A stretch of 64,000 nt of DNA from Neoconidiobolus thromboides FSU 785 (lineage: Eukaryota; Fungi; Entomophthoromycota), in contig MU626310.1 of assembly GCA_025603075.1 (NCBI GenBank), forward strand, positions 53,038 through 117,037, given 5' to 3'. Under the pieces are notes generated by a model. That model saw only the letters and a list, made by a program, of their open reading frames with translations. It ran no database searches and was not told the origin of the DNA. Below are positions 7,293-51,326 of this stretch, piece by piece. The stretch's first letter is position 1, and each line of letters opens with the position of its first letter. The position numbers were made by a program, and so were the translations under genes.

Positions 7293-7541
7293 AATATTCG
7301 ATTTGAAGTTCATAATAAAAATAGCTCTAATATATTTAATTTTAAATGTGGATTATTTTAGTTTTGAACTAATTTTATTGTTCTTAGTTTTTAAATAAAT
7401 TAGCAAAAAAGAAATAAACTTTCAAAATAATACCCAATTAAACTTAAATAAACGTTTATAATAATATAAAATGAAACATTGATACAGCCCCTAATAAGTC
7501 ATAATACAAGCTTAATGGCTTTCATACTTATTTAAATTACC

Positions 7542-13063: not shown

Positions 13064-13164
13064 GAGGGATGTTTTTTTGCGTTTAAGGATTTTACTAACA
13101 AATTTTCCGCTCAAATAGTGCTTAAAAGATGGAAAGAGTAATCAAGCCAAAAAAAACACCCCCA
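13064..13164 (+). mobile_element. MITE-like ~100 bp element, copy 1
   Basis: GAGGGATGTTTTTTT...TTTACTAACAAATTTTCCGCTCAAATAGTGCTT...AAAAAAACACCCCCA; imperfect TIRs. Confidence 0.75.
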
Positions 13165-13292
13165 TTATTTAAATAAAAAAAATTATTAATAAAATTTTCA
13201 AGTAAAAAAGTATGAAGTTTTGAATTAAATTAAATCAAATTATATAGATCTATATAAAAAAAGGCTTATAAATTATAAAAAATAATATTATA

Positions 13293-13392
13293 AAGGGATG
13301 TTTCTTTTGATTCCATCACTTTTTCTATTTTTTAAGCGCTATTTGAGTGAAAAAATTGTTAGTGAATTCTTAAACAAAAAAAGGAATCCCTA
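13293..13392 (-). mobile_element. MITE-like copy 2
   Basis: Reverse-orientation copy with core TTAAGCGCTATTTGAGTGAAAAA. Confidence 0.7.
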
Positions 13393-13411
13393 CATGTTTA
13401 CTTTTATTATT

Positions 13412-13511
13412 TGAGGATGTATTTTTGTGTTTAAGAATTTTACTAACAAATTTTCCGCTTAAATAGCGCTTAAAAAATGAAAAAAATAACGAAGTCAAAA
13501 AAACACTCCCA
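13412..13511 (+). mobile_element. MITE-like copy 3
   Basis: Full length; both internal CpG sites intact. Confidence 0.75.
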
Positions 13512-13689
13512 TTTTGTATAATTTATTAATAGTAAAAATTGTTTTTTATTTATTTTTTATAATTTATATGATAGTTATATCCCATGCTTATAAATTAAAG
13601 TTTGTTTTAATTATATAGCTTAGAACATACAAGTACCAGCTTCATTCAAGATTACAATGCTACATAAATAATTGTTCTTATTTAAAATA

Positions 13690-13784
13690 GGGGGCTGTTT
13701 TTTTTAGTTTCATTGTTTTTCCGTTTTTTAAGTGCTATTTGAGTATAAAGATTGTAGTAAAATTCTTAAAAAAACACATCCCCA
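13690..13784 (-). mobile_element. MITE-like copy 4
   Basis: TA|GGGGGCTG...CATCCCCA|TA. Confidence 0.75.
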
Positions 13785-13897
13785 TATGACGTTTCACTAT
13801 ATAATTAAAACTTAAACTTTACTCATATTTCTAATTTTTATTATAAAGTGTTTTTCTATCTTTTTCAACTGTATTAAATAGTATTTTAATAAAAGTA

Positions 13898-14228
13898 TTT
13901 ATATTTATATTTATATTTATATTTATATTTATATTTACATTTATATTTATATTTATATTTATATTTATATTTATATTTATATTTATATTTATATTTATAT
14001 TTATATTTATATTTATATTTATATTTATATTTANNNNNNNNNNNNNNNNNNNNNNNNNNNNNNNNNNNNNNNNNNNNNNNNNNNNNNNNNNNNNNNNNNN
14101 NNNNNNNNNNNNNNNNNNNNNNNNNNNNNNNNNTTTATATTTATATTTATATTTATATTTATATTTATATTTATATTTATATTTATATTTATATTTATAT
14201 TTATATTTATATTTATATTTATATTTAT
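13898..14228. repeat. (ATATTT)n microsatellite spanning the assembly gap
   Basis: Near-perfect hexamer repeat on both sides of 100 Ns. Confidence 0.95.
14034..14133. other. Assembly gap (100 N)
   Basis: Run of exactly 100 N. Confidence 1.
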
Positions 14229-14597
14229 TTATATTTTTATTTATTTATATTTTTATTTTTATTTTTTTATTTTTATCTTTATTTTTAGTATAAATATAAT
14301 TTTATATTTTACTAGATAACTTTTATTATATTATGTATACTTAACAAATCATTATGAAGCTTTTTTAATTTTCAGCTCTTACAACTAATATAAGGCAAAT
14401 AAGCTTTAAACACTAAATTTCATGTTTAAAATAGATTAAATTTAGCAAAAATATTAAAATTTAAATGCGTAATTTTTTAAGACTGAAAATGAAATAATGA
14501 TATGAAATTTAAGCTATTAAATTAGCAAAAAAATTATTTACTAAATTGAATTGTTCTAGTATTAATATAAAAAAGAGTATAAATAAATGTATAAATA

Positions 14598-14680
14598 TGA
14601 GGCTGTTTTTTGACTTCACTTCTTCCACTTTTTAAGCGCTATTTGAAAGGAAAGTAAATTTTTGAATTTTTTTAAATACT
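14598..14680 (-). mobile_element. MITE-like copy 5 (degenerate)
   Basis: TGAGGCTGTTTTTTGACTTCAC...TTAAGCGCTATTTG; the other end is decayed. Confidence 0.6.
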
Positions 14681-14954
14681 AAATGAAAAAACATTACCAT
14701 AGAGGAGTAATTTGAATTAAGCAAAAAGCAGCTAATTTTATAGTACTTCCTTGTACTCGATTTGCAATCTTTACTAAAAACCTAAATTGCACAAAATATT
14801 GAACCAAGCTTTTAAACTAACTCAAATAAAAAAGTATTAAAACATAAATGCCAACAATATATCAATTTATTTATTTACTTACATCTTATTGAGAATATTA
14901 ATTTATTTCATTATTAGTCTTAATTTATAAAATAAATACTAACAGAACTCTATA

Positions 14955-15054
14955 TAGAGATGCTTTTTTGGCTTCATCGCTTTTTCCATCTTTTAAACGC
15001 TGTTTGAGTGGAAAAAGTGTTATCAGAAATTTTAAACAAAAGAACACATCCTCG
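14955..15054 (-). mobile_element. MITE-like copy 6
   Basis: TA|TAGAGATG...CATCCTCG|TA. Confidence 0.7.
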
Positions 15055-15479
15055 TATGTTTATACCTAATATTAAATTCTATAATTATATTAGTGGGATC
15101 TCTGGGTCTATCTGGATTAAACATGAGTGATACATAAAATTAATAGCAGATAAATTCAATAAACTTAATAATATTATATGGTGGAATTACTCAATAAATA
15201 AATCAATAGGTATAAAAATATTTATAATAACCCATTACTATCTTTAAACTAATATTTTAATTTTTGAATTATACTTAAAACAACAACACTTCATAATAAT
15301 TCTAAATTTTAGTCTATCAAACGGGATAAAACAGCCACGTCTAACCAGAGTAAAAAAAACAATCCGAATTCTTTTAAATTTTTATTCAAAATAATACTGA
15401 AAGTAACTCACAAAACATCAGGCCCTATAAATATAACATAAAACCTCACTTAATATAAAATTCAACTTCACTTTTTCAT

Positions 15480-15901
15480 TTAGTGGGCCTTTTCAACAAT
15501 TCTTTGAACTAAATCCTCCAAGGTATTTAACTCATAAATTTCTTCATTAGTAACTTGAATTTGAAATTCATTATTAATATCTTGGACTATTGCTTTCATA
15601 TCTGAACCATCTAAACCAAAATCAATTAATTGAGAGTCAAGGTTAAGCTAAGAAAAATAAACTATTAGTTCAACTTAATCAAAATATCAAGCAAAGAATA
15701 GTGATAATTGTTAATACTTACAAGATCTTCGGGAACTAGTTTATTTTTTAAGATAGTATTAAGTCGAAGTTGTATGGAATTTGTAGTATTTGTTTTGACA
15801 CTGGTGGCCATAAATTTTGACTTATTAAATCGATTGAGAAAAAGAGGAGCCCTTTTTTTAAATAACTGAGACACTTTAATAACTTTGAAAACTTTCAACA
15901 T
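15480..15901 (-). CDS. Mitochondrial acyl-carrier-protein-like protein with non-canonical GLDGSD motif
   Basis: Basic presequence-like N-terminus; phase-0 intron 15648-15721. Exon 2 reads LNLDSQLIDFGLDGSDMKAIVQDINNEFQIQVTNEEIYELNTLEDLVQRIVEKAH*, which follows the ACP pattern (DLGLDSLD...IEEEFGIEI.D.....I.TV.D). Confidence 0.7.
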
Positions 15902-16685
15902 AATATTTTTGAAAAAAAAATTATTATCTTGTATTTGTTGTCTTTATATATTTTTTGAAACTCAACTAAGTTTTGAAATATTTGAAACTATTGTGCTTTC
16001 CTCAATACCAGCTTATCAACCAATTTCAAGTATTCTAATTTTTATTGGTATGCTTTAAAATTCAAATGGAATAATATTAAGCTTAGGTTTGAAATACCTA
16101 TACAAATTCTTGTTAGCTGTCTTGATTTTTTAGTCACAAGTTTTGATAACTTGAATTAATATAAAAAATTAAAGTGGACTTATTTTTAGATATAGAAAAT
16201 ACTAGGATATAGTTAAAATTAAATGAGCTTTACTGATAGTACTTTAATAATCAGATGCTTTATTGATTTTCATAATATTGTTGAATGTTATTAAAAACGA
16301 TACACTCTGAATAGAGTGGAATCTATTTTAATCAATACATTATCAATAAAAACTTGATTTTTAAGAATAGTATTTCATATAGCAAATACAATCATGATCA
16401 TAAATATTGGTGTAGAATTCTGTTCACTGTTACTAAAAAATAGGTTCGTTTGGATAATGAAACTTTGTATTTGCATTTTATTTAAAATAACAGTACTTTA
16501 TTTTAAAAATCTAGAGTGAATTTATCAGATAAATTTTAAGATCTTAACTGCAAACGTAGATTATTAATCAAAAAATAGATTTAGTGTTTAAAAAACGATT
16601 TTTTAGTCACAGTAAACATAATTTTATACCAATTTTATCATAATTTATTATTTTTTATAACATTAATGAAGGGGAATTTATACTT

Positions 16686-16786
16686 TGGAGGTGTTTTTTT
16701 TGACTCTCATCACTTTTTCCATCTTTTAAGCACCATTTAAGCGAAAAAACTGTTAGTAAATTCTTAAACACAAAAACACATCCCCA
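16686..16786 (-). mobile_element. MITE-like copy 7
   Basis: TGGAGGTGTTTTTTTT...AAAAACACATCCCCA. Confidence 0.75.
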
Positions 16787-17080
16787 TTTAATATCATATG
16801 GTTTTAGTAAAAATAGTGAATTTTATATAATAAACAAAATAAAATGAAATAAATAGGAAACCGTTTGATAAAATATCTTAACAATATGTATTGATAAAAG
16901 TTAAGTAAAAGTATAAAGGATAATTATCAACTTTATTGAATCATGTTTATAATGTATGCTACATAAAAATGATTTTATAATAACATGGTAATAGATATCT
17001 AAACTAATATCAATTTATCATTTTAAAGCAACAAAGGATCTCTAGTCATTAACTTATAATTGATATAAACTCATAAGCTT

Positions 17081-18016
17081 TTAGCCCTTTAAAAATCCTT
17101 TAATTCTTTCAAACGGATTAGCTAATATTTCACAAGATTGAGCTTTTGGTAATAAATATTTGTCAAAACAACATTGAAATTGATTTGTGTTATAGCATTG
17201 ATTTTCATTACAAATTTTATTTCCCTTTTCACACAATATTTGATTAACACAATCATATAAATTATTATCATAAGTTCCCTGTTTACATTCATGTTTTTCT
17301 ACATTTACTTTCACTTCAGTAACTAAATTACGAAAGGGAGTATATGGCTTAAATCGAATACTGCTTCCTTTTTCATTATATTCTTGATCACTTAGTACTT
17401 CCACATCAAAACAAGATGTATATTCTTCCCCTTTACCATTATTATCTCGATCAAAATGCCAGACCCAAATTAATTGATAAACTCCTATAGATAAATTCAT
17501 TGGTATGGTATAATTACCAATACAAGGTTTAGGTCCAATTCGATTAAAATAAGTAATATCACTACATTCCCCATCATCAAAAGGTGCTTTTATTAAAGGT
17601 TCGATACCAAACAAATCTTTTCTTTTTAAATACTGAGAACCATCATTTAAATCCCCTAGATATGATTTGCGATTTAAATAAACTGAATAAATATTAGGAT
17701 GAGGTTTAAAATCAGGAGGTAATCGATCTAAATTAACATGCCCATTTTCAAAATAATCAAAATATAAAGTTTGTCCCGACTTTACTTTAGCCATAGGGTA
17801 CTCTGGTTTATAATAAGGCACAGATTGATATTTAGGATCACACAATGGTACTTCAGGACTTCGATCAAGTATTTTATATGTAGATAATAAATCATAATGT
17901 CCTTGAAAATTCCTTATATATCCTCCACAAGAGCCATCCGTTCTTCGGTCTGTACAATCAAGCCAAGAATGTGTGAGGACATTTTTTATTAATAATATTA
18001 AATACAAACTTTTCAT
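17081..18016 (-). CDS. Secreted LPMO-like (His-brace) protein with C-terminal Cys-rich CBM52-like module
   Basis: Signal peptide MKSLYLILLIKNVLT followed by HSW; also ENGHV, FDDGEC, YTIP...GVYQLIWVW, EEYTSCFDVEV, and the tail YDCVNQILCEKGNKICNENQCYNTNQFQCC. Intronless. Confidence 0.65.
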   Translation of the reverse strand: MKSLYLILLIKNVLTHSWLDCTDRRTDGSCGGYIRNFQGHYDLLSTYKILDRSPEVPLCDPKYQSVPYYKPEYPMAKVKSGQTLYFDYFENGHVNLDRLPPDFKPHPNIYSVYLNRKSYLGDLNDGSQYLKRKDLFGIEPLIKAPFDDGECSDITYFNRIGPKPCIGNYTIPMNLSIGVYQLIWVWHFDRDNNGKGEEYTSCFDVEVLSDQEYNEKGSSIRFKPYTPFRNLVTEVKVNVEKHECKQGTYDNNLYDCVNQILCEKGNKICNENQCYNTNQFQCCFDKYLLPKAQSCEILANPFERIKGFLKG

Positions 18017-18486
18017 TTAAATAAAGTAAAGTAAAAGAAAGAAAAAATAACAAGATATATATAATATCAACAGTTAATAAATTACATCAATTAAATTATC
18101 ATAATATTAACAGGTTACTTAGCTCATCAACAGTTTTATTTTATTATCGATTATTTAGTGGTAGTTAAATTATCAAATCTTATCTATTATTATTAAATTG
18201 GCTTGTTGATATTTTTTACAACGTATTTTTAAATTAAACGTATTTTTAAAAATTTCAAGATTAATAGTCTAATTATAGTAAATAATTATTCTAGTGCAAC
18301 TTCAAATTGAACCAATAAGCTTCGTTCAGTTCATTAGCCAATAAAAAGTAGAAATTCTAAATAAGACCAATGGAATAAGGGATCAATTCTATCTTTCTAT
18401 CCCAAAAAAATTGAATTATTTTAAAAATACAATAACAACTTTGAGCTTTGTTTTAAAACAACACTACAATAGAAAATCATATCATC

Positions 18487-19577
18487 ATGTTATTCCAACT
18501 TCAAAGACAGTTGAAATCAGCTTCCATTATCAATTATACTAAATTTATTCGTTCAAGCTATTCTATTAAACCCGATATCAAATTGATCTCTAAAATTCGT
18601 CAAGAAACTGAAGTTAGTATTACTAAAGCCAAAGAATCCTTAATAGCTACCAATAATGATTTAAAGGCTGCATTACAATGGTTAGAGAAGGATTTGATTT
18701 CATCTGGGGCTAAAAAAGCAGCTAAACTAGCGGATAGAGTAGCCAGTGAAGGGTTAATCGGGGTTGCTGTACAAGAGAAAGAAAACAAAATTGTTGCAGC
18801 AATGGCAGAGGTAAGTGAAATTGAATCAATATTAATTTTCTATTAACTTTTTAATATAAATTTAATTAGGTATGTTGTGAAACAGATTTTGTTACTCGTT
18901 CCCCTATGTTCCATCAATTGGTTACTTCGATTTCAGAAACTATAGTTCAAAATCAACTTCTTGAAACCAATTTTAACACTGTTAAAAAATTAAGCCTTGC
19001 TGAGGATACAGTTAAACAACTTTCAGTCAATAATGGAGAAAGTAACGTGAATGAATTGATATCTGAAAATATAGCTAAGTTAGGTGAGAATTTAATATTA
19101 AGAAGAAGTTTAGTTAGTCAATTTGAAATTGAAAATCAAGATAAAGTGTTGGTTGCTACTCATGCTCATAATGGTATTGGTAATAATGGTAAAATTGGAG
19201 GGTATATAGTGATTCGAGTTAAAGGAGATGTGAAGGATCAAGTCAAATTAGATAAAATTAATAAACAATTGGCTAGACACGTAGTGGGTTTAAATCCATT
19301 GTATTTATCTTCAAATGAAGAAGCTGTTATATTAAAGAAGGATTCAATGACTGCTGAAGAATACCAGCAATATTTAAATGAAAATGTATTATTAAATCAA
19401 AACTTTTTATTTAGTAATGGTACTGTTTTAGAATTTCTAAAGAGTATTGAAAAAGAATTGAATATAAAATTAGAAATCTTAACTTATTCTAGATTAATGG
19501 CAGGTGAAGGAGTTGAAAAAGTTGAAACTGTTGATTTTAGAGACGAAGTCATGAAACAAGTGGAAAAATTTAATTAG
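18487..19577 (+). CDS. TSF1: Mitochondrial translation elongation factor Ts
   Basis: IKLISKIRQETEVSITKAKESL (UBA-like), RVASEGLIGV, CCETDFVTR across intron 18811-18869, KLGENLILRR and QLARHVVGLNP. Confidence 0.9.
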
Positions 19578-19711
19578 ATATTTTCAGAATAGAAAATTAA
19601 ATAAATAAAAAAATAATATTTTATATTTTAATAGCTTATTATTTTTATTCAATTTATTTAAATTATTTTTTTACCTTTATTTTTATTTTTATTTTTATTT
19701 TTATTTAATTA

Positions 19712-21450
19712 TTAAACTTATTTTGTTCACTCTTTTCTTTTAATAAACTAATCATTTTATCCGCTGTTGACCAAACATTTCTATTAGCTAAAAAAAGCAG
19801 TCAATAAACTTAAAAATCAAAAAAAAAAAACTTACCGTTATATAATTCCAAAAATCCATCAGTTAATTTGGTAAATAATTTAATAAACGATAATACTATT
19901 TCATCTACTTTTTCTTCCTTTACTAATCTTTTGACTTTTAATAATCTTTCCATTTCCCTTTCAATTTGTAATTGTATATTGGAATTACATCGTTGTTTGG
20001 CTTCTAGATATAATTGATATTCATTATGAATTTGATTTAATAAACATTTGTCTATAAAAAATTCAATTAATATTGGTTGAACTACTTGTTCAATCATTTC
20101 TTTATAAACTTCTAATGGAAATCGTGTAATTAATTGAGAGGTTAATTCTAACGCAAACCATCGTCTATCTACCACTGGATCTTTTAATAATGAGGGGAGA
20201 TAATCCTGCATTACAACTAAATTAATATTAAATAGTTTATTAATATATATTTATTGTTATTATTATTATATTTACTTGTTGAAGGTACGTATTTAAATAT
20301 TGGCTCCAATAAATCCGAGTTATACATTTGTTTATGGATTAATGGTATTAATTTAGGATCTTGAATAAATAATTGATGAACGTAAATTAATGCTAATTTT
20401 CTTATTATATTTATATTTTCTATTATAACAAAAAAATTAATATTAAATATTATGTGTTTATAATGTTACTTACTTTGATTATCTTCATGAAAATTTTCAT
20501 CACAAATATCTAGTAAAAATTGAATAATTGAGCTATTTGATAATCTAATAGTGTCTTCTAATTTAGCTTGTACTATTTTAGGCTAAAAATAAAGATAAAA
20601 ATTAATCAATATCATTTTACTCTTACAAAATAATAATAACAATAAACAAACTTACCACAATTTCAAATTGATTTCCAATTTTGATTGTATTTCTAGCAAT
20701 TGTTTGTATTCTTTTTAATTTTAAATGAGTAGCCATCCGTACTCCTTCATAAACCTAATAGAACATTTAATATTGAATTATACAATATTAATATTATTCT
20801 AATTTACCTTTAAAGTAATCTTAAATAATAATGGAATTTTTAACATTTTTGGATTTAATACAAATAATGCCGGTGTAGCTTCAATTAAAGCTGGTAATGT
20901 AAACATTCTATTATATTATTTTAATATCTATAAATTATAAAATAATGTTAAACTTTTACCTTACAGAATCACAAGCGAAATCTTTATTTGAAGCATAACT
21001 AACTGTTAATGGCCATAAACTTTCAGGTATATATTCATTAATTAATATCCATAGATTATAAAATAACATTAAACTTTCTTCATCAATACTAAATAAAACA
21101 AATCATATTAACCTTTTTATTTTCATAATTTTTATAATAAACAAATTTTACCTTTCATAAGAAAAAAATATTGGAAACATATTAACAATTTCTTGAGTTA
21201 ATGAAATAATAATATCTAAATTAAAGCTACTTATATAATGTAATGTAAGTTTTAACAAAATTGTATCTTTTCTACATTCTTGTAATAAAATCTTAATTAC
21301 TGTATTAAGTGATAAATTATCCAATGGTTGTTGTATTAATTGTTTAATTTGAGTTAAGTAAGGTATAGATATTTGAGAACTAATTCTAAAATATTGATAT
21401 TAATATGAATATATGAATATACAAAAATATAGTTATCAATATTGATAACA

Positions 21451-21481
<31 letters not shown>

Positions 21482-24400: not shown

Positions 24401-24557
24401 CAATGTTCTAATGGAAATTGTTTTGATTAGTTAGACTATGCTCTTTTTTTTATGAATTTAAATTGATCCCAGTATCACTTACTGGAAAATTCAACATCTC
24501 AGGTTCAATACCATATAAAAATTCTAATTGCATATCTTCTAATGTAGCTGGTGCCAT
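19712..24557 (-). CDS. Hypothetical large multi-exon helical protein
   Basis: In-frame exon chain separated by many short GT-AG introns: MAPATLEDMQLEFLYGIEPEMLNFP / NIEFFYRTMTDVL / FRVWNYLSNIDWKT / ACLKLLFLYIDIQ ... VDRRWFALELTSQLITRFP ... KEKSEQNKV*. Family not recognised. Confidence 0.6.
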
Positions 24558-25181
24558 ATTTCGTATTCGTTGGGTTAGAATTAAAAATGAGAAATGAAGT
24601 TTTGAATTTTTAGTTTTAGTTGATTTTAAAAAAATGAAATTGATGGTATTGCGTAAGATGAAAAATGCTACTCAATGTTTTATATTAACTGTGACATTTA
24701 TTAGCCAAAATGTAAAAAAATGAGGTAGTTAATGTGAAATAGCCCAGGTAGATTTTTGGAAAAAGGAATTCCAACTATTAAAATTTAATTGTACAGCAAT
24801 TACTGTTTATTTAGTAAATAAAGCTTTACCTAAAATTCTTTAAAAAAGTACTATATTAGAAAGGGACATAATATAATTAAATTGCTAAAATTGAATGAAA
24901 ATTCCTGTCACAACGAAAATTGAGCAATTTAGCATGTATAATATTAATAGTGAAAGTTGTAGTATATGAACAAACACATATTCTTGTAAAATTTTATAAA
25001 AAAATATCCGCTGTTGACTTTATACATAGATTTGGCCTTATGATCATTTTAAATAAATAAACTGAAAAAATTAAAGCTCTTTATTTAAAAATTTAATATA
25101 GCTTATTCAAATAATAGCCAAATTATTTCAATATTAAAATTACGTTAATAGATTACTAAGTCAAGAACCAGCTACATAGGG

Positions 25182-25344
25182 GATTAGCCCCAAAGCTATA
25201 GTTGACCATCCTTATATAATGTAAACAATACAATAGCAGTCTTCATATATCATTATAACTATTTACTCTCTGACTATTTACTAATTTAATTATTACTAAT
25301 TTAAGTAGCATTGATATTTTTGTAAAACAAGCTTAGGGCTAATC
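25182..25344. repeat. Second TIR-bounded element (~163 bp)
   Basis: GATTAGCCCCAAAGC ... GCTTAGGGCTAATC inverted ends; the left ~50 bp resembles 63758-63810. Confidence 0.4.
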
Positions 25345-25715
25345 TTTTAATTTTTTATCTTCTATAAACTTTACAACTTTAATTAGAATTTTATTATGTT
25401 TTATTGGTTTATCAAATACTGGATAGCAATATAATTTATTATTATGTTTAATGAGATATAAGTACTTTTTAATCCTTTATTTTTATTACTTGTTTCATAT
25501 TTTTGTTTTTTATATTTTTTAAAAACTGTATCTATTTTTCAATAGCTAATTTATCAATTTTATTGTATTTATAAAAATTAACTAATTAGTAATTTTTATT
25601 ATATAGGATTTTTAAATTTTTTATCAATTGTATTCTTTTTATAATACCTAATGAAAAAAATTAAAGTTCATTTTTAAATTATTATTTTATAAATTATTAA
25701 AATATTTGCTATATA

Positions 25716-25808
25716 TGGGGATTTTTTTTTTAGTTTCATTACTTTTTCCATCTTTTGAGCACTATTTTGGCGGAAAAATTATTAGCGAAATCCTTAAACA
25801 AAAGAATA
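25716..25808 (-). mobile_element. MITE-like copy 8 (truncated)
   Basis: Abuts copy 9; one TIR is missing. Confidence 0.7.
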
Positions 25809-25810
25809 TA

Positions 25811-25892
25811 TGGGGATATATTTTTTTATTTAAGAATTTTACTAACGATCTTTCCACTCAAACAACGCTTAAGAAATGGAAGAAGTAATGAA
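25811..25892 (+). mobile_element. MITE-like copy 9 (truncated)
   Basis: TA|TGGGGATA...GAAGTAATGAA, then directly into copy 10. Confidence 0.7.
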
Positions 25893-25893
25893 A

Positions 25894-25994
25894 TGGGAGT
25901 GTTTTTTTTGACTTCATTATTTTTTCCATTTTTTAAGCACTATTTAGGCGGAAAATTTGTTAGTAAAATTCTTAAACACAAAAATACATCCCCA
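25894..25994 (-). mobile_element. MITE-like copy 10
   Basis: TGGGAGTG...CATCCCCA, full length. Confidence 0.75.
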
Positions 25995-26477
25995 AATCAT
26001 AAAAAATATCCTCATATCCTCACATATTATCTGGTTAATATTTATTATTTTTGTTAAATTTTGATAATTAAATTATTAAACAAATATTATATAATAGCTT
26101 TAGCTTGCTTGTTTTTTTATGTTTTTAATAGTAAATTATAAGATCAATGTTTCCTTATTATCAATTGTTTCTAGATAAACATATTGATTTTTACTTATAT
26201 CAAATCCAAAAAATTCATATTTATTAAAAAAGTACCCTAAAGCTATGACTGATAATAATTCTACTCTTTCTTTTTTTCTAAATATTAACTTTATATATTA
26301 TTTAATTAAATTTATTATTACTATTGTTAAAATATTATAAACTCGGATTGTGTTAAATAACTATCAAATTTATATGAATAAATTATAATATTTATGTTGT
26401 ATACTTTTTTTACTATAGTAAGATTTTTAAAAGTTTTATTTCAAAGTTTATAAAAACCTACATTTTATTTTAGTAAA

Positions 26478-26575
26478 AGGGGATGTGTTTTTTCGTTTAA
26501 GAATTTTGCTAACAATCTTTCCACTCAAATAGCGCTTAAAAATAGAAAAAGTAATGAAGACAAAAAAATATCCCA
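26478..26575 (+). mobile_element. MITE-like copy 11
   Basis: GGGGATGTG...AAAAATATCCCA. Confidence 0.75.
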
Positions 26576-26647
26576 AAAAAATAAAAATAATCAAAACAAG
26601 CTTTTCGAGTTTGTTTCTTCAATTCAGCTTTTTAATTTAATTAACTA

Positions 26648-26745
26648 TATAGATGTACTTTTTTAGCTTTATCACTTTTTTTATTTTTTAAGCACTATTT
26701 GAATAAAAAAGCTATTAGTAAATTTTTTTAAAAAATACATCTTTA
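26648..26745 (-). mobile_element. MITE-like copy 12 (degenerate)
   Basis: TATAGATG...CATCTTTA; shares one TA with copy 13. Confidence 0.6.
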
Positions 26746-26747
26746 TA

Positions 26748-26843
26748 TGGGGCTGTTTTTTTTGGTTTGATTATTCTTCCATTTAAGCGCTATTTGAGTG
26801 GAAAGATTATAGTAAAATTCTTAAACAAAAAAATACATCCCCA
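26748..26843 (-). mobile_element. MITE-like copy 13
   Basis: TA|TGGGGCTG...CATCCCCA|TA. Confidence 0.75.
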
Positions 26844-27326
26844 TATATTAAAAATTTATAATCTTAAAACCTTAAATTTTGGATTAATTTTCAACTAAAT
26901 TTTAGAACTAGTTTAAACGTCCCCATATTTCTAAAATTCAATATTTAGAAAGTTATAAAATATCAGTATTTTTTATTTTAAAGTTTTTATTTTTATTTTT
27001 GAATTAAATTACCTATTATTACCTAATCTAAATGAATATAGATATTATAAAACTATTAAAAAAAATTATTATGAGTATAAAAGTCATTATCTTTAGAACT
27101 AATTCAAACTTAATAGCTTTAAATAATTTAGTAAATTAGTGCAAAATTATAAAAAGTAATTTTATGGCTTATATTTTAGTTATTTAAATACTATCCTTCT
27201 TTATTTTTATATTAAAACTTCTATTTTTTATTTTACTTTTTATCATATTTGTATTTATTGTTTTGTATAATTTATTAACAAGTATTTTGCGTTTATGATA
27301 TTTTGTATGGCTCATTTTTTATTATA

Positions 27327-27392
27327 TGGAGATGTGTCTTTTATTTAAGAATTTTACTTAGAAAAAGTGATGAAGCCAAAAAAACATCCCCA
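27327..27392 (+). mobile_element. MITE-like copy 14 (internally deleted, 66 bp)
   Basis: Both TIRs and both TA flanks retained; the central ~35 bp is absent. Confidence 0.7.
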
Positions 27393-30546: not shown

Positions 30547-30771
30547 ATATTATTTATGTAATTCAAAATAAACCTATTTTTATTTAATTTTGCGACTTTT
30601 AAATGTGCTTTATATACTTGTTATAAGTAAATAATTTACAAATTCAGGGATTAAATTTATTTACATACAAATGAAAGTATCCTTTTCACTATTTTGTCCG
30701 TTCTTTTATGTAACTTGAAATTTAAAAAAAAATTAAATACTAAAGCAAAAATATACTCAAACAATATAACT

Positions 30772-36286: not shown

Positions 36287-36340
36287 AAAGTATAGGTTGA
36301 CCCGAAATCAAAGTATAGGTTGACCCGAAATCAAAGTATA
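36287..36340. repeat. 23-bp direct repeat, about 2.3 copies
   Basis: AAAGTATAGGTTGACCCGAAATC twice, plus AAAGTATA. Confidence 0.9.
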
Positions 36341-36640
36341 TATACGATGGTATAGAAAATTTTGAAATTAAAAGTAAAGTAAAAATTGCAACATAATTTA
36401 TTAATGAATAATACTATAATTTTAGAACAGTAATTAGATATTTGAAAATACGTTCAAATTCAGTTAAACTTTTGTTTACAAAGCGTAAAGATGATTTGAT
36501 CAATAATATAACAGGTACCATGTAATTACATACTTAAGGTTAAGATCACTTAACAAAATTAATAGCTTACTTAGCTTAAGGGACCATTTAAATCATCTAT
36601 GTGCCATAAATAAGAATTAATACAAGCTATACGCTTTAAC

Positions 36641-38041: not shown

Positions 38042-40494
38042 AATTTATATTTAAATAAGTATTAAATTCAAAAAAGACAAATTAAGTTAGTAAAATAGAC
38101 AAGTAGAGAAGGATATTAAAAACAACTAAATAATAAATTGTTTAGTTGAAGTAAAATAAAATTCGAAAAGTAATATTAAGTCTTTTATATAGTTTTTCTA
38201 CTAAATTTTTTAACTTATTTTAAAATTTTGTTTTTTCACTATAAATGGCTATCCACATTTAAGTTGAGTGTTTCCTATTAGGAATAAATTAAGTGTGAGT
38301 CTAGAAACAATTAATCCACTAAATGTGTAAAGGTTGTACAGTTTGATTGGTTTGGCGTTCCAGATATAGATTTTTATGCAATTAAAAGAGGGAGAAAAAA
38401 AAATAAGCCGGAGATATGTTTCAATTGATTGGCCTTCCTTTCAAATTCCATTTTTAACCTTGATCTTTCGATTTTACTTTTTAAAGTTCCTGGCATGAAA
38501 TTTATTCTTAGCACCTAAATATAAATTGTATTATTAAAAAATTTATTAACTTTATGTAGAATTAATAAATGTTATAACTTAACATAAAAAATATATTAAA
38601 TGTAATTAATGACATCCACTTAAAATTAACATAGATTTTATAAGTGCAATTTTTGAAACATATCAATGCCAGAAGTGACGATATTATAAATGTATCTACA
38701 CACATTTCTTATATACTTGGCATGTTTAAAGCTGGTTTCATTTTTAAAATTATCATTGTCATTAACCCGTGATTTTGGTAAAATCGAAAACTTTAGTAGC
38801 ATATTATAAAAACGTTTTGTAACTGTAGCTCGAATGATAATTTAGCCAAGTATTGTTCATCTTTATTATTGACAAAGAATTAAATATAGGAAATGACCTA
38901 GTAAATTTATACAGAATTTGAAACATTTTAACTTAGTTTATCTCCACCGCTTTGTTTTCAAATGTAAATCATTGTTTCTTACTCCAGCTTCTGCCTAGCT
39001 TTAATAGCTTGAATAAATAACTTGAATTACAATAAAATTCTCAAAGAGTATTCGTTTTAAGCATATTCGTCTCTGTATGATATAAAATTCAAGGATACTA
39101 TCAAAAGTATAGCAGCTTCTTATATTTATTAAAATAATGATAAAATCTAATATATGGTTTGTCATTTTAATTTTTTATTCTATATGATCTGATTAATTTC
39201 GTAATAAAAGCCAAACTGTTCTAAAGAATAAATGGTTACCTCCAGTTCTTAGAAAGCAATTCCATTTTTTCTCCTCACTTTTTAATAAAAGGTTCTTAGA
39301 ATTACAACCTTTATTATTGGTTCTATTGAAATTATACTGGCTTCAAGTAGACTCAGTTTTGAATTTAATTTGACAAGCTTTTTGTTGTAATAATGGAATT
39401 AATTAATGCTTGAAACTATAAATAGTTCTGTAAAGTTGAATATTCATGACAACAACATCCTAGGTCATAATTATAACCCGTGTAGTTCTCATATTAATTT
39501 CCCGACAATCTATTGGCCTAAACCAATGTATATTTTTAGTAGGATTAAACATTCGCACTTTAAAGGAGAATTCATACTTTTATTAATAAAAATAAAAGAT
39601 AGTATAACGTAAAAGTTAATTTAGGAAGGTTGTTAATGTATTATACTTGTTTGTTCACTTTCCGTTTATTGAATTAAAATAAGTGGATAAAAAATACCCA
39701 ACTTATCTACTTTAAGCCCAAAAATAAAGGTTCTAAAAAATTCTATTAATTTTAAAATTGGCCGATTAGAAAAAGTGATTGCTTAGATAATTTAAGGAGT
39801 TGTAAAGAACAAAGTACTTAATTATTCCCTGAAAAGATTCAAATTTATGAAAGAGCATAAATTTTTATTATAATTTATATGAAATGTGGATTTTTCGGTT
39901 CGAAAAAATGCATATTTAGAACTTTAGAACTCTAAAAAGACGTTTAATAACTGTATTATTATAAAAATCATTAAGAGGTGCTAAATAGTTGCGATGTATT
40001 TGAGAAGATTAAGTTATACGATTTAAAAGTATGTTTTTATTTTTATCAACTGATTCATCCCTTGATATTTAATTTATATTTGAACTATTCAATTTTGCCT
40101 ATCCTGAAAGAGTTTTTTATTGAAATTTTTCAAAGCGGAACAAATTTGACTTAAATTAAAAATAAGTTATGTATACACTCTCATCTTGATAAAATGCCTT
40201 CAAAGATATTATTAAAAAAATATTAATTTTTAATGAATTTTCACCTTAAAAGGCTGTTTATTAAACTGACTTTGAATTTGCACACATAAAACATTCACTT
40301 TATAATTAAATCAATAGCATCCCCTTTATTAAAACATTTATTAAAAACAACCTATTCATAAAAAAATGTCTTTTTAAACAGGTTATTATATTAAAATATT
40401 GTTTTAAAATATTTGATTTCAAAACTTTAATAACAGATTATATTAGACTGTAGTTCTTGATTCTTAAGTGATTTTAAATCCCTTAGTAGTTTTA

Positions 40495-40588
40495 TGTGGA
40501 CGTTTTTTTGGTTTCGTTACTTTTTCCATTTCTTAAGCGCTGTTTGAGTGGAAAAACTACCACTAAAATTCAAAAAAATACATTCCCA
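40495..40588 (-). mobile_element. MITE-like copy 15
   Basis: TA|TGTGGACG...CATTCCCA|TA. Confidence 0.7.
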
Positions 40589-41236
40589 TATGCTATTAAG
40601 ATTTGTAGTAAAAAATGTCGAGTATAAAGATTGAAAATGTTTATAAATAGAATACCGTTATGATGGATGAAAGTATCTTTATTAATATAACTAACACTAT
40701 TTAATAAATTAACTTTGTTTTTATTCTTGAAAAACAATTAAGAATACTTTTTACATTAGATTAAAAGTATTCTTATTTCAATTTTTATCTATTTTAATAA
40801 CAATACAAAAATATAATTTGGATAAACTTAAACCCTAGGCTCAATGTTTTCCCAATTTTTGTATATCACTAAAGTATAATTACGAATAAGCAATATGAAA
40901 ATGAAAGGGTTGTTTTCAGTGTTTAAAAGATCAATAAAACAACTAAAAATTATTCTAGAAAACTGATTCAGATTTAATAAAATATAAATTTATTTTTTTC
41001 TTTATATCCTGTTGACTACTTGTCTTTTGATAATTTCTAGAAATATATACGTTGAAGCTTAGTTTATTGATTTAAAAAAAAAGTGATTTCAATTAATTGT
41101 CAATATTGTTCTAGATTTCAAAAACTATAAAGTAAAGCTTATAATTTTAATCCTTAAATTTATGAAAAGCAATAGTAAGTATAGTATAATTAAACATTTA
41201 ACGTATGTTTTTCAAATTTAGAATTTAAACAATATA

Positions 41237-41334
41237 CGGGGGTGTTTTTTTTGACTTCACTTTTTCCATTCTTTAAGCACTATCTGAGTGGAAAAATTGT
41301 TAATAAAATTCTTAAACAAAAAAATACATCCCCA
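41237..41334 (-). mobile_element. MITE-like copy 16
   Basis: TA|CGGGGGTG...CATCCCCA|TA. Confidence 0.75.
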
Positions 41335-41671
41335 TATAATAACAACTTTTGCTTTCATTGTTAATAAGGTATAAATATTACAAAACAAATATCATTTTTA
41401 AGTAGTGTAATGCTATTGCATTTTATAAATTAAACAGTCATATAATTGAGAATTTTTCTACTTAATATTAATAACAATGTTCAAAAACAGGAAAAATAAG
41501 CAGAATAAAAACGCCTGTTAGCCTTATTAAATAGTACCTTTTATTTGGCTTGATAAGCAAGGTAAAATATAATTTTAAGCATAAATCAATGAAGCGATGT
41601 CTATTTTGAAAGCAAAAAACAAAAGTACATTTAGTGGAAAAGCTTGACTTGAAAAAAATATGCTAAAAATC

Positions 41672-44600: not shown

Positions 44601-46313
44601 ATTCTTCCATGATTCCATTATATTTCCTTTCTAATAACTCGTATGAGAGCGAACCACCATCAATTAAAAATGGATGTGATTTCATAAATTTAGTAAGGGT
44701 TTTGATAGCATTCTTTCGGACAATAACGCTTTTATCTTCTAATCTTCCAATAGTTAAATGAATAAGGCGTGGTCTTCTTTTAGGAAATTTTGCCTTTAAT
44801 CTAAGAAATGGGACTCTGGTTAGCTAAAATTAAAGATGGGACTAGCTTATTTTACTCTGTTATTCTCCCACAAACTTGTAAAACTTTACTTCGAACAAGA
44901 TAATGGTTGTCTTTGAATCTCTCTTCTAAAATATCAAAATAACGATCAACCATTGATTCATTATTCTCTCCTCTACCCTCTTTTTCAATCTCGTTCACCA
45001 TTTCAATAATTAGAATCCCTACAACTTCAATGATGGCAGATCGTATATGATAGCACTATTTTTTGTTTAATAGTTCACTTTATAAACAAAAGTACTTTAC
45101 CTCACTGTCAAGCTGTTTAATTAAAATGCCAATGTATTTATTTACAGTTTTAGGACAAAGTTCGCAAAATCTGACCAAAAACGAAGAATATGATTTTGGC
45201 CCATATTTATCCTTGATTGTGAATTCTTTTTTTGACATATCGCTATATTATAGAATCCTGTAAGTTCGTTTTACTTTCTTTCAAAAAAATGAATACCTTA
45301 AAACTTCTTCAGCTAATCTAGTATAGTCATATTCATTCACCATCATTTCAAGTAACTCAGCTATAGGATCATGTAAATTTTCAAAATATTGTAAAGTTTG
45401 GGAAACAAAGGTTTGTGTTGTTAAATTATGATTGTAATCTTTTGCACATATCGCTATTATATGATAGGATTTAATGCGTGTTGTCTGATTCTTTAAGTTG
45501 TCAGTTGACTGCAAAATTGAAAACATACTTTTTACAAACCCCCTAAAAATAGTTTGTTTATTAATATAAAAACAAAAACATATATCTTTACCTTGTGATC
45601 GTTTCAACTTGATAATTGGAAGAAAATACTTTTTTTAAAGGTAACGTTGCAATCTTATAGACGATCTCAAACAATCTACCTTGTTTTCTCAACCAATCCC
45701 AAGAGTGAGACTGTTGACGTTGGTTCCTATTTCCTCTAGAATTCTATTTATCAGTACTTTTAGAGTCGTGATTTATTTGTACTCGATTACTTACCATTGC
45801 TTTGGTACTTTTTTCAGTTTCTTGTTTTGATTCAGCATAATTGATTATAATATATAATAAAAACGAATATAGGTTTAACGCTGTCAATTCTTCTTTTTGA
45901 ACTAAAACTCCGTTTTTTAAACTATCTTCAATCGATTTTATTAAGTCCTGTGCTCCTAAAAATATTAATTCAAATTAATTATTCATAACTCGATTTTTAA
46001 ATTTTTTTACCAGACAATATCATATCAAAAGCACGATCCATAATTGCTGGAGATACAATCAATAAATTCCTAAAGTTGATTTAGCGATGTCCTTTAATTT
46101 AATTTAATTTTACTTTATGATACTACGTAATCCATCGAATATCTTAGAGCTGGCTATTTTTAAATAATCTGAACTTAACTTGTCAGTTGCTTTATTTATA
46201 AACTCCAATAACTCTTGCTTAGATGAGTTTTCAATGTCAATCTCTTCCTCAATCACCATGCTCTTCTCATCAAATTTGATTAGCTCATCTCCCAAATTGA
46301 AATCTGTATACAT
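41672..46313 (-). CDS. YCS4: Condensin I HEAT subunit Ycs4/Cnd1/NCAPD2, multi-exon
   Basis: LAKLMCISSEFC, DPIVRSNIMIALGD, LTHLILNGMVKVKGQIGEMAKC, FFTELATKDNAIYNNLPD; acidic C-terminus. Confidence 0.92.
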
Positions 46314-46804
46314 CGTTTATTTTTATAAATGAAAGAAAGTAATTTTGTTGCTTTTAATCCTCCCTGAAATATAAACCAATCAAATATAAACTCTTTGTAT
46401 GAACCGAAATAAAGCTGCTTTTCAGTCTTGAAAATAAAATTAACATTATTTGAGATAATGTGAATTTTTATAGTAAATATATTTTAAATTTTATTATTGG
46501 TTTAAGCCGTAAATAGGTACAAGGAAGGTACTATTCTAATTAAAATGAATTATTTATTTCAAGGAGATTTATATATTGATAAAAGTAATAAATGTTTATC
46601 TATGTATGGATCTCAGACTTAAAAATTATTTACATTAAATTTCAATCTTCAAAGCTCTGTTTTATATTTCATAATCAAATAAATGAGGCAATAAGAAATA
46701 AACCACTTATTTATATTAAAAACTTTTATTTAAAAAAATAAAAAGTAAAATGGCTACATTTAATTGAAGAGTTTGATTCACACCTTCTTTATCACAAATT
46801 AAGT

Positions 46805-48343
46805 TTAAGCTGCTGGTTCAACTTCTTTTGGAACCTCGTTTTCTTTTCCATTTTCTACATTTAAGCCATGTTTAGCTTTAAGTTCTTCAATCTTTTCTTG
46901 AGCTCTCTTTCTCTTTTCGATTGATGCCTTTTCTTGATTAAGTTTGAAGAACTCAATCTTCTTTTGTATAGCAGTTAAAAGATCTGGAACTCCAGTAGAG
47001 GAAGTTGGGATAGGAAGTTTAAGGGATGAAAGGGCGTCCATGATTGATAATGGGATGGTAAATGCAGCAGGTTTTGAGCTGGCTTTTGAGCTAGGCTTCT
47101 TTGAGCTCTTTTTGACTTTGTTTCCCATGAAAAAGACATCATCACGGTCTGACTTCTTAACTAAAGCGGTACCTTGAGGTTGATTGGAAGCATCGACTTG
47201 TCTAGCAGTGCTTACGTTTTGTGGTTCAGCCTTTGGAGATTCAGCTTTACCATTGGTCTCAGATGAGCCTAATATACGGTGGAAATAAGATAATAAAGTT
47301 CCACATTGGGCAATTTCGGTTTCAAAAGCAGGCAACTCTGCAAGAGCAAGTTCTTCTTTAATAAGTTCTTCAATCCTTTCTTTTTCTTCTTGTTGTCTAC
47401 GAGCTTCATTGACCTCTTGGCGTCTTTTAGTTTCTTCTCTCTTCCAATTATAAAATTCATCATTTGCTTTTTTATGATTTCCAATGATTTCGCGACGTTT
47501 TTCATATTGCTCATCAATTTTTTTGCGAATCTCGTCTCTTTTTTCAAAGAGTTTGCTCTTTTTGGTCCATTCTTCATTGTTTGAAAGATTGAGTTCGTCT
47601 AATTTAGCCTTGATTTCATCGTATTCAGCATTAATGGCTTTGGATTTGGCTTCATCAATCCCAGATCTAATAGCATCTAATTTTTGACGATCTTCTTCAA
47701 GAGAATCTTCTATATCCATGATAATATCAAAAGATTTCTTACTTTTTTTAAGTTGGGATATTTCAGACAAGATTTTCTTTTCTTCGATGACCTTCAACTT
47801 CCCACTCTCAACCTTTCTCTCTTGTTTTCTTTAAAAAATATAAGCACCTAATAAAACAACACAGATAAATGACTTACGATATATATTCTTCAAGCTCAGC
47901 CAAGGATCTAAAGCTATTCTTAGATTGTAAAGCTTTTAAGTCACTAATCTAAATAAAAGATTAGTATTTTTTTAAATAAACAATATGTTTCTTACTTTCT
48001 TCTTAATAGAATTTTGCAAAAGGTTAATGTCCTCTTGCTTTGATTGACGAGCTTTCTTTAAGGAAGCTTGTTGGTCTCTAAGATTAGAAAGGTTTTTACG
48101 TAATTCAGTACGAGGATCGTCACTTTTTCCTTTTCCTTTATCGAATGCATTGATTTCTTTACTTACTAACTCCTTTAATAAAGTTTAAATACAATAAAAA
48201 TGGAAAAGTGAAACTATTACCAATTTTTCCTTTATTTTGGCTATTTCTTTATCTGTCTGGTCCAGACTATTTTTATAAGTGGCTTGGTCTGGTTTTTGAG
48301 GTGCTTTAGGGGCTTTAGCCTTAGGAGTTTGAACTGTTGTCAT
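46805..48343 (-). CDS. BFR1: Bfr1-like coiled-coil protein, multi-exon
   Basis: KPDQATYKNSL N-terminus, long coiled coil, EEKKILSEISQL, ELPAFETEIAQC and LIEFFKLNQ-type C-terminal pattern. Confidence 0.65.
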
Positions 48344-48939
48344 TTTATCGAATTTTAAAGTGAGTGAAGGACTTTTTCTTGGGATAGTTTGGTAATAAAT
48401 AGTTAAATATTTTGTGTGGTCATTTGATTCGCTACTCTTGTAACCAATTAAAGGTTACTAAATTTAGTAGCAAATAAAAAATTAAAGAATTTTAATAAAT
48501 TTGTGAATTTAACCATTTAATGTAATTAGTTGCCACTTGGAGTTTATATTTATTCAATGTTGAATAGTTACTTTTAGACAAATGCTTACGGTTTTAAATA
48601 TTATAATATGTAAGGGTATTGTTAATTAAATCTTGTTTTTTTTACAGGAAAATTCAAAATAACCGTTTTAGTTTTGAACAATTAGGAGTTGGCGTCTTCT
48701 CAGTAAAGTTTTATTTTAAATTAAAGTAAAAATTAACTATATTTTAAATATAACATTCTTGTTTCTGTACAAATATTTACTTCACAAACATATGCTAAAA
48801 TAAAGCAATTAACTATAAAAAGCTTTTAGATGTTATAAACAATAATTGTTTAATTTAAAGTCGCGATGACTTTATCTCAATCGAAACTTCTAGTTAATTT
48901 TCTAAAGTTTTATTTTAGGCTCACATTTATAATACCAAA

Positions 48940-49029
48940 TGAGGATGTTTTTTTCGGTTTCATTATCTTTCTATTTTGAGCACTATTTGAGCGGAAAGTT
49001 TAACAAAAATTTTAAAAAATACATCCCCA
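48940..49029 (-). mobile_element. MITE-like copy 17
   Basis: TGAGGATG...ACATCCCCA. Confidence 0.7.
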
Positions 49030-49526
49030 AATCATAATTTTCATTTTTCTTCAAACCTATTTTAAATGTTTTCCCCAAAATATATATCATTTTACTGTAT
49101 TAGCGCATTATTTGTTTAAATATAAATATAAGCATAGATTATTAGAAATTATTGGACCACTTTAAAAATATATAGTTTTAAAATCAATATGCTTATGTAA
49201 CGTTTTGTAGTTGTTTATTTCGTACTTTAGAATATAAATATGTTTTCATTTATGTTTTCAGGTTCAAATAAGACAAAATTCAAATTATTACTTTCTATAA
49301 TCAAATTTTCATATAGAACTAGATTTAAAGTATTTTGTTTATAGTTATGATTGTGAATGAGTTCAATTGAATCTCTGTACTTATGATTCAGTTTATTAGA
49401 AAGTTCGAAATTTTTTAAATGTAACCTTCTGATAGCGAATAAAAAGCATTTAGCTTATTAAAGTGTTCCTGTTCTTATAAATTTAAAGACTATAAAAATT
49501 AAAAAATTAGAATTAACACTTCAAAA

Positions 49527-50890
49527 ATGGTTTTTACAAATTTTACAAAACCAGTATACTTGGTGACTTTGTTTAAAGGAATCCAGATTTTTCGGTTATA
49601 TTAGAATTAGTTGGAACTGATGGTGAAATTAATAATAATGTATATTATGTCTCTGGTGGAACCCTTCAATCAAACTTTGAAGAGGAAGATCAATAGATCA
49701 CTAAAAAGGATTTGAATAGTGAAATTTATTATTTAAATACCAAAGGAACAATACAGTTAAATGACAGTCAAAATGCAAATTCGGAATTTGCCCCATTTGA
49801 ACATCATCTTCTAAATACTCTGTTTTCTCATAACACTATTAAAATTGAGAATGATTCAGAAAAGCCTTTAATCATAGACGGATTATTGATATCACTTGAG
49901 GATAGCGTAAAGATTTTTAATACCAAGGCTAATACTTGGAAAGCAGGTTGAAATCACAGCCAATTTATCAAAAATTTATACTAAATCAAATGATTCTCAA
50001 CTAAATTATGAGTTTATTAGAGTAAGCTTAACTCAAAATGATTTGAACTTAAATGAGTTAGTTTTATATGGAGGAAAGTACTATCCTACTAAAAGAAATG
50101 GATGTAAACTAAAGTGGTTTTTATTCCAAAGTAATGATTTGTAATATTAGTAATTGTAAATTGAGAATGGTTGGAGGACATGGTGAACATTAGATTAGTG
50201 GTCATAATGCAGTTATACACAATAGTAGTTTAGTGATATTTAGCAGCAAAGATAACCTCTTTCATAAATCTACTAAATTTAATATTGTTCCAAGTTTTAG
50301 CATTAAAGACAAACAGTGGTATGATTAAATAACAGCCGAGGAGTTTCCAGCTATAAGCTATGTACTTGTTTAACATTTAAATCACTAGTGCTACTCAATA
50401 CATAAACGAGATTTAAAACTTTTTTAAACCAATATACTGACAGTTTACTTCACATTTTAAATTTAAATACTTTTATTTATGAAGAGCATTCCGTTTCTAG
50501 ATTAACTAATGCTTGTTTTGATTATTTAGAATATCATGTCAAATATTTATTGTGTAATTTTAGGGCATACTTAGAGTACTGCTCAAAACTTAAATAGCTG
50601 GTTTAAATCATTTAATCTTAATATACAGATTGCCTCCAAAGAAGAAATGTAAGATCCAAAAACAAAAATCAAATATCTGTTATTGTTGGTGATTCAATTC
50701 GTGGGCTTTTAGTGCCTATTTTGTTGATTGTTTTGATACATTATATATATAAGAAATTTGTAAAATATCGTATTATAAAAAAACATCTTTACCTATTTCA
50801 GAGCCAACTAATGATATTGTAGGGATGCTTATTAATAACCAAAGTTTTCATTTGGGCATGATAGCCTTGAATTCAATGATACGAATTAAA
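49527..50890 (+). pseudogene. Decayed kelch-repeat, single-TM protein gene (copy A)
   Basis: Homologous along its length to 51771-53205 (YYVSGG, LVLYGGKYYP, KIFNTKANTWK, SGHNAVIHN); many stops and frameshifts. Confidence 0.65.
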
Positions 50891-50988
50891 TCGACGTTAC
50901 TAAAGGCATATATCTTTATGATTATTTTAAAAAATAACATCTCTAGCTCTTCTTTCTCCTTTAGGCTTACCAGTAGACCTTCAATATA

Positions 50989-51083
50989 TAGGGATGTATT
51001 TTTTATTTAGGAACCTTACTAACAATTTTTCCGCTCAAACAGCACTTAAATGGAAAAAGTAATGAAGTTAAAAAACATCCTCA
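50989..51083 (+). mobile_element. MITE-like copy 18
   Basis: TA|TAGGGATG...CATCCTCA|TA. Confidence 0.75.
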
Positions 51084-51087
51084 TATA

Positions 51088-51186
51088 TATATGTGTTTTT
51101 TTGGCTTCATCACTTTTTCTATCTTTTAAGCACTATTTGAGTGGAAAAATTGTTAGCAAAATTCTTGAATATAAAGTATACCTTCA
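51088..51186 (-). mobile_element. MITE-like copy 19
   Basis: Inverted partner of copy 18, separated by a short TA run; the terminal G-run is lost. Confidence 0.7.
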
Positions 51187-51226
51187 TATATTATAATAGT
51201 TTTATTGAAAAAAATAAGTCATAAAA

Positions 51227-51326
51227 TGGGAGTGTTTTTTTTGACTTCATTATTTTTTCCATTTTTTAAGCGCTATTTAAGTGGGAAATTTGTTAGTAAA
51301 ATTCTTAAACATAAAAATACATCCCA
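51227..51326 (-). mobile_element. MITE-like copy 20
   Basis: TGGGAGTG...CATCCCA; very similar to copies 3 and 10. Confidence 0.75.

Follow-up and report, generated by a model that had tools for sequence, protein, structure and literature searches.

A high-copy family of ~99-bp inverted-repeat elements in Neoconidiobolus thromboides, very probably derived from a Sola2-type DNA transposon

The closest described counterparts of the elements reported here belong to the Sola2 superfamily. Sola2 transposons of dictyostelids (DFa-1/2/3 of Dictyostelium/Cavenderia fasciculata and PPa-1/4/5 of Polysphondylium pallidum) make 4-bp target-site duplications of the AWWT type (ATAT, AAAT, ATTT) (Bao & Jurka 2013, PMC3627910), and MITEs (miniature inverted-repeat transposable elements) of the Sola2 class have been catalogued in insects (iMITEdb, PMC5199201). 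A 2017 survey reported one Sola2 case in all fungi and described Sola transposases as lacking Pfam domains (PMC5751038). In this study, we analysed a 64-kb stretch of DNA of Neoconidiobolus thromboides FSU 785 (hereafter the window), in which an earlier note, made from the letters alone, had described 20 copies of a ~100-bp hairpin repeat in four clusters. The window is C53:53038-117037 of a 24.6-Mb genome assembly of 799 contigs. Our results make it very probable that these repeats are a high-copy MITE family, made up of 97-99-bp non-coding deletion derivatives of a ~2.36-kb DNA transposon of the Sola2 superfamily.

Compared with the dictyostelid elements, the N. thromboides system has the same 4-bp, AT-only duplications of the AWWT type, short imperfect terminal inverted repeats (TIRs) that begin with G, and a transposase that is homologous across all three catalytic blocks. 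It differs in its host, a zoopagomycete fungus, in the length of its full element (~2.4 kb without a Fanzor gene, against 10-15 kb), in its termini (GGGGNTGT instead of GAGC/GAAT), and in having apparently given rise to a ~99-bp MITE that is present thousands of times. The insect families are likewise short and non-autonomous, with TIRs, and were placed in Sola2 from the features of their duplications and TIRs (PMC5199201), but their hosts belong to another kingdom, and the link proposed here also rests on an autonomous partner and on transposase homology. Stowaway and Tc1/mariner MITEs resemble the family in size, AT-rich target, fold-back and high copy number near genes; unlike them, it duplicates 4 bp and not TA, and its partner transposase appears to be Sola2 (DDD, no Pfam domain). 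The literature searched for MITEs in Entomophthoromycotina yielded none, the matches concerning arachnid mites.

We searched the window with an nhmmer profile built from it. The results showed 20 copies of the 97-99-bp repeat, and repeat finding recovered the family as well. The copies form four clusters, all AT-rich and non-coding, at 13.06-16.79 kb, 25.71-27.40 kb, 40.49-41.34 kb and 48.94-51.33 kb. Its terminal motif matched 27 times in the window against 5.25 expected, a count reached by none of 100 shuffles. The repeat, its copy number and its clustering were all borne out. The copies had also been called intergenic, and this held when judged from open frames and GC content only: the repeat-bearing stretches have 14-26% GC (~26% overall), and the only open frame of >=90 codons that any copy touches is a spurious one, made by three abutting copies. 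Given the positions of target 4-mers, the chance of all 20 copies lying outside open frames is ~0.01. Genome-wide, a 21-base core with <=3 mismatches matched 2,728 times in forward and 2,716 times in reverse orientation (5,444 in all), against 12 matches for a reversed-pattern control. A single copy used as the genome query gave 3,455 first-look candidates, and twenty 10-kb samples (200 kb), picked regardless of matches, held 69 copies. The core matches and the density in the unselected samples together point to a family of ~5,400-8,500 copies, equal to 2-3% of the 24.6-Mb genome.

An alignment of 79 full-length copies, taken from the window and from loci fetched elsewhere in the genome, gave a 99-bp consensus, GGGGATGT...ACACCCCC. 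The TIRs are ~15 bp long with 2 mismatches (5' end GGGGATGTATTTTT; reverse complement of the 3' end, GGGGGTGTTTTTTTT). A MITE family with TIRs and a fold-back, as claimed from the first reading, is upheld. The consensus proposed at that time matches ours inside, but the T and the A at its outer ends come from the target: the termini are GGGG...CCCC and not TGGGG...CCCCA. When copies with flanks were oriented, the four bases preceding GGGG recurred directly after CCCC. Of 45 copies, 28 had the same 4-mer on either side; in a set of 92 it was 58, where 2,000 shuffles of the partners gave 31 on average and 41 at most. Flanking repeats of 3 or 5 bases in the same register were rare. Among the 92 copies the duplications were ATAT (39), ATTT (9), AAAT (5), TTAT (3) and GTAT (1). 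In the TTAT/TTAT and AAAA/AAAA copies the supposed terminal T and A vary with the opposite flank, indicating that they belong to the target and not to the element. The target-site duplication is thus 4 bp, of AWWT type and mostly ATAT; the non-palindromic sites ATTT, AAAT and TTAT decide for 4 bp over TA.

Two paralogous empty sites gave the same register. Sister transposon copies read ...ATTATACAATATT..., with a single ATAC, where locus L003 has ATAT-MITE-ATAT (L003:4355), and locus L001 reads ...TTGTTAAATGTTAAG..., with a single AAAT, where L003:5694 has AAAT-MITE-AAAT. The closest sampled pair of MITEs was 98% identical, with ATAT duplications on both and unrelated flanks, indicating transposition and not segmental duplication; confinement to segmental duplications had been named beforehand as an argument against mobility. 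Sampled copies differ from the consensus by 5-29% (mean 12%), and they fall into at least four subfamilies whose members diverge pairwise by 7-10%. The family looks old, and its divergence and subfamilies fit several old amplification bursts. Per site, the 79 copies carry ~3 times as many C>T and G>A as A>G and T>C changes from the consensus. This spectrum is consistent with mutation strongly biased from GC to AT or with a process like repeat-induced point mutation (RIP) or deamination.

A search for ORF-bearing elements with the same TIRs had also been suggested, and one was found. We defined this partner from L001, upstream of the window, and from eight further loci found by a genome search with its open reading frame (ORF). 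The autonomous element is ~2.36 kb long, runs GGGGCTGTCC...CAGACAACCCC and has an imperfect TIR of ~22 bp. Each of its ends has the terminal GGGGNTGT and ~35-50 bp of subterminal sequence in common with the MITE. The alignment of the two reaches well past the terminal octamer (GTTTCAGAATTTACT against GTTTAAGAATTTTACT; AAAATAATGAAAC against AAAGTAATGAAGTC), and the 3' 46 bp of the autonomous element match MITE 3' ends (blastn, E down to 1.6e-8). Autonomous copies and MITEs show the same AT-only spectrum of 4-bp duplications: ATAT/ATAT surrounds L002:3994-6348 (C11:75994-78348), L004 and L009, and a fuller copy at L001:2111-5195 (C53:45210-48294), 4.7 kb upstream of the window, is flanked by ATAC/ATAT. 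MITE insertions inside autonomous elements were found repeatedly. At L001:3985-4082 and L007:4613-4711 a MITE occupies the identical ATAT site in the transposase ORF, after ...NHDSAY, which reflects either an insertion hotspot or propagation of a MITE-bearing copy.

The genome search with the transposase ORF returned >150 fragments, nearly all with stops or truncations. Transposase fragments of the family carry annotations as K502DRAFT hypothetical proteins of N. thromboides FSU 785. None of the copies read through has an intact transposase, and the longest frame has 415 codons (L003). The only frame otherwise open from ATG to stop is that of L002 on contig C11, whose 562 codons cross an assembly gap at L002:5256-5744 (C11 ~77256-77744). 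The window itself had been described as free of any autonomous transposase; it proved to hold a decayed Sola2-type element on the minus strand at ~25.08-26.92 kb (25084-26924), with ~62-64% nucleotide identity to the 2.36-kb element (blastn, E=1e-44) and transposase remnants at 25291-25473 (tblastn, E=5e-12) and 26112-26276 (E=2e-7). Its 5' end, ATAT followed by GGGGACGT, lies at 26924, and a search for its 3' boundary, which is uncertain, could not locate it. Six window MITEs (copies 8-13) sit in this element. The segment 25182-25344, a possible second TIR family, falls within its 3' part.

The transposase carries a D..D..D core, formed by DFKQN, W-D-G-HF[RK]S and HGKSIVDGHFG. We aligned 10 sequences, the fungal ORF and database relatives. 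The results showed that W-D-G-HF and K-VDGHF are invariant, as are D209 and D251, and that the first D (DFKQN/DFKEN block) is present in most; L003 has N there, the region is missing from one sequence, and for P0007 the alignment starts only just upstream of it. Sola transposases are said to be DDD enzymes, reportedly described as such by Bao et al. in 2009. The N. thromboides protein matched no Pfam family, and so shows no piggyBac domain, and it had no sequence match among PDB chains.

A hidden Markov model profile of the transposase was searched against 1.84 billion representative proteins, giving 2,971 matches at E<=1e-3, and a reference protein was recognised among them through six motif strings of 10-11 residues. 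This match, P0150, is DFA_08389 of Cavenderia (Dictyostelium) fasciculata (E=3.5e-41). All three strings taken from the published transposase of Sola2_DFa-2 occur in it, and it aligned with the fungal ORF by pairwise BLASTP at 31% identity over 237 aa (E=7e-25), spanning all three catalytic blocks. The Sola2_DFa-2 and Sola2_PPa-1 transposases are printed in Additional file 3 of PMC3627910, and by eye every conserved block was common to them and the fungal protein. This homology to published Sola2 transposases, together with the 4-bp AWWT duplications, argues that the partner transposase is a member of the Sola2 superfamily, the Sola references compared being Sola2 alone.

The closest named relatives of the transposase are all from Zoopagomycota: Smittium angustum, Furculomyces boomerangus and Conidiobolus coronatus. 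Protein searches with a word index went no further than N. thromboides, Smittium and metagenomes, the dictyostelid transposases probably exceeding the length range of that method. In a language-model atlas the nearest clusters (score 0.95-0.96) were Pfam DUF7869 (PF25273) proteins of arthropods and nematodes, and one close Smittium relative matched this family below threshold (E=5.6e-4), whereas the N. thromboides protein had no match to the Pfam model even at E<=1. DUF7869 was mentioned nowhere in the literature searched, and its relation to Sola2 is only a lead. A metagenomic relative of the Sola2-type core, P0129 (1,136 aa), is fused to a C-terminal UCH (ubiquitin carboxyl-terminal hydrolase) domain (Pfam E=1e-24).

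If the MITEs derive from this transposon, the Sola2 transposase, acting in trans, would have bound the common TIRs and moved the short elements by cut-and-paste. Their number would have risen to ~5,400-8,500 through several bursts, started by different master copies that the subfamilies now represent. A preference for AT-rich targets, combined with selection against coding insertions, would have concentrated the copies in AT-rich intergenic nests, and such nests would often consist of copies within one another or within dead autonomous copies. The family looks largely extinct: sampled copies lie 5-29% from the consensus, and every readable transposase is broken. Several observations weigh against this account. 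At positions 9-16 of the TIR the MITE departs from the autonomous copies sampled, and a closer parent subfamily may lie outside that sample. Mobilisation in trans by this exact element is what we infer, its best candidate, L002 on C11, being interrupted by the gap. ATAT targets alone fit a TA and an ATAT duplication equally, and the case for 4 bp depends on the ~20% of copies whose duplications are non-palindromic and on two empty sites, which are paralogues inside one isolate and not sites polymorphic between isolates.

Four other explanations were weighed. The repeats might be structured small-RNA genes or selected regulatory hairpins, instead of or besides selfish MITEs. All copies are intergenic, the consensus folds as one long imperfect hairpin with a minimum free energy of -17 kcal/mol, and covariation measures were marginally high, with 16-32 of 500 shuffles as high. 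The z-score of the fold is only -1.8 and averages -1.5 over individual copies. RNAalifold predicted 0 conserved pairs on the MITE alignment, and Rfam gave no match in the window at gathering score. Changes that break a pair of the consensus fold number 286 and compensating ones 26, roughly tenfold fewer, and paired cells amount to 87.2% against 86.8% in shuffles. The marginal covariation excess can be attributed to subfamily relatedness alone, as expected of related subfamilies free of structural constraint. The modest z-scores, the lack of conserved pairs and the excess of breaking changes argue against a selected RNA structure, and the fold-back would be a by-product of TIR and subterminal symmetry. 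With mobility shown by target duplications and unrelated flanks, we consider a small-RNA or regulatory function for these repeats very improbable.

Even less probable is cross-mobilisation by some other transposon that duplicates 4 bp, such as a piggyBac-like element or another Sola group, with the resemblance to Sola2 being coincidental. The divergence at TIR positions 9-16 speaks for it. The targets, however, are AWWT and not TTAA, the similarity to the Sola2-type element extends ~35-50 bp into both ends with significant 3' blastn matches, the two have one duplication spectrum, and the transposase, matching nothing in Pfam, has no piggyBac domain.

The earlier note had favoured a Stowaway-like MITE with TGGGG...CCCCA termini and a TA duplication, mobilised by a Tc1/mariner/pogo transposase. 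This reading draws on the 23 of 45 copies that show TA/TA beside T-GGGG...CCCC-A and on ATAT sites, which are formally compatible with a TA duplication. It fails on the ATTT, AAAT, TTAT and AAAA copies, where 4-mers match and TA is not duplicated, and on the TTAT/TTAT and AAAA/AAAA copies, which do not have T...A as their supposed terminal bases. Shuffles gave exact 2-bp repeats in that register as often as the real flanks, and the element that shares the termini encodes what is probably a Sola2 transposase and not one of Tc1/mariner type. A TA duplication and a Tc1/mariner/pogo origin were therefore abandoned as extremely improbable. The same note's 'TT-flanked' subset has practically no chance of being Helentron/HINE derived through TT insertion without duplication, since the copies with TT beside the earlier boundaries carry exact ATTT/ATTT duplications and the TIRs of all others, the termini of the family are inverted, and no Rep/Hel partner was seen; the supposed 'TA' and 'TT' subsets arise from ATAT and ATTT target sites.

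At ~2-3% of the genome, the family marks most AT-rich intergenic regions and should be masked and annotated, and it bears on other readings of the N. thromboides genome, for example of genes 'preceded by a MITE'. For classifying transposons it is useful as a clean case of a MITE linked to its partner within Sola2, a group little studied so far, and it places putative Sola2 transposases in several Zoopagomycota, against a survey that reported their near absence from fungi (PMC5751038). The superfamily and Sola2-class MITEs are already published, and no new kind of biology is involved. A broader proposal, which we regard as improbable when taken as a whole, is that Sola2 is long-standing and widespread in Zoopagomycota, that N. 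thromboides may retain an intact copy (the gap-interrupted one on C11), and that the ~5,400-8,500 insertions may supply regulatory or small-RNA-generating intergenic sequence. If the C11 copy were intact, Sola2 and its MITE would be a live system, and the first in a fungus to be open to experiment.

Within the window, the first cluster (nhmmer starts 13062, 13290, 13408, 13687, 14596, 14952 and 16685) comprises copies 1-7. Copy 1 (13065-13163, plus strand) has flanks ATTA/ATTA if a one-base indel is allowed at its 5' end, copy 2 (13290-13396, minus) has degenerate ends and flanks TGTA/TTTA, and copy 3 (13413-13510, plus) has an exact ATTT/ATTT duplication. Copies 4 (13691-13783, minus; ATAT/CTAT), 6 (14952-15058, minus; ATAC/ATAT) and 7 (16687-16785, minus; AAAT/AAAG) each show one mismatch between their flanks, and copy 5 (14599-14698, minus), flanked by CTAT/ATAT, is divergent. 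An assembly gap at 14034-14133 is bordered left and right by a (TTTATA)n microsatellite. Since the last copy before it ends at 13788 and the next one starts at 14596, it lies outside all MITE copies and is irrelevant to the finding.

The second cluster (starts 25713, 25807, 25891, 26477, 26657, 26745 and 27323) is largely the nest in the decayed autonomous element. A triple at 25713-25998 consists of nested or abutting copies with truncated junctions: copy 8 (25713-25818, minus) is truncated at the end where copy 9 joins, copy 9 (25807-25893, plus) has ATAT before its 5' end and a 3' end truncated at the abutting copy 10, and copy 10 (25895-25993, minus) has an ATTT/ATTT duplication. Copy 11 (26479-26575, plus) is duplicated at AAAA/AAAA, the base preceding GGGG being A and not T. 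Both ends of copy 12 (26657-26741, minus) are degenerate, and ATAT/ATAT duplications flank copy 13 (26749-26842, minus) and copy 14 (27328-27391, plus), which an internal deletion has reduced to 64 bp.

The third and fourth clusters start at 40493 and 41234, and at 48938, 50985, 51095 and 51225, respectively. Copies 15 (40493-40592, minus; ATAT/ATAA) and 16 (41238-41333, minus; ATAT/GTAT) have one mismatch each in their flanks. Copy 17 (88 bp; 48938-49033, minus) has an ATTT/ATTT duplication, and copy 18 (50989-51082, plus) an ATAT/ATAT duplication. Copy 19 (51095-51175, minus), with degenerate termini, abuts copy 18 across (AT)n, and copy 20 (51228-51326, minus) has flanks ATTT/ATTT if its first G is taken as lost. 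Gaps of <=500 bp separated 55% of neighbouring copies, against 16% under a Poisson process, and 10% of neighbours abut. The orientation of neighbours showed no bias, the 57 pairs being -+ (18), +- (16), -- (14) and ++ (9), and the idea of an inverted partner after each plus-strand copy was rejected.

Long bacterial-style ORFs are few in the window, and their products are typical of fungi, for example a cytochrome-b5 desaturase, a catalase and an exchange factor resembling Cdc24. A tRNA scan of the window gave no match. An ORF at window positions 2766-3305 (plus strand) encodes a long (H-X)n histidine-rich tract (HNHSHSHNVHNHTHDHSHDH...).

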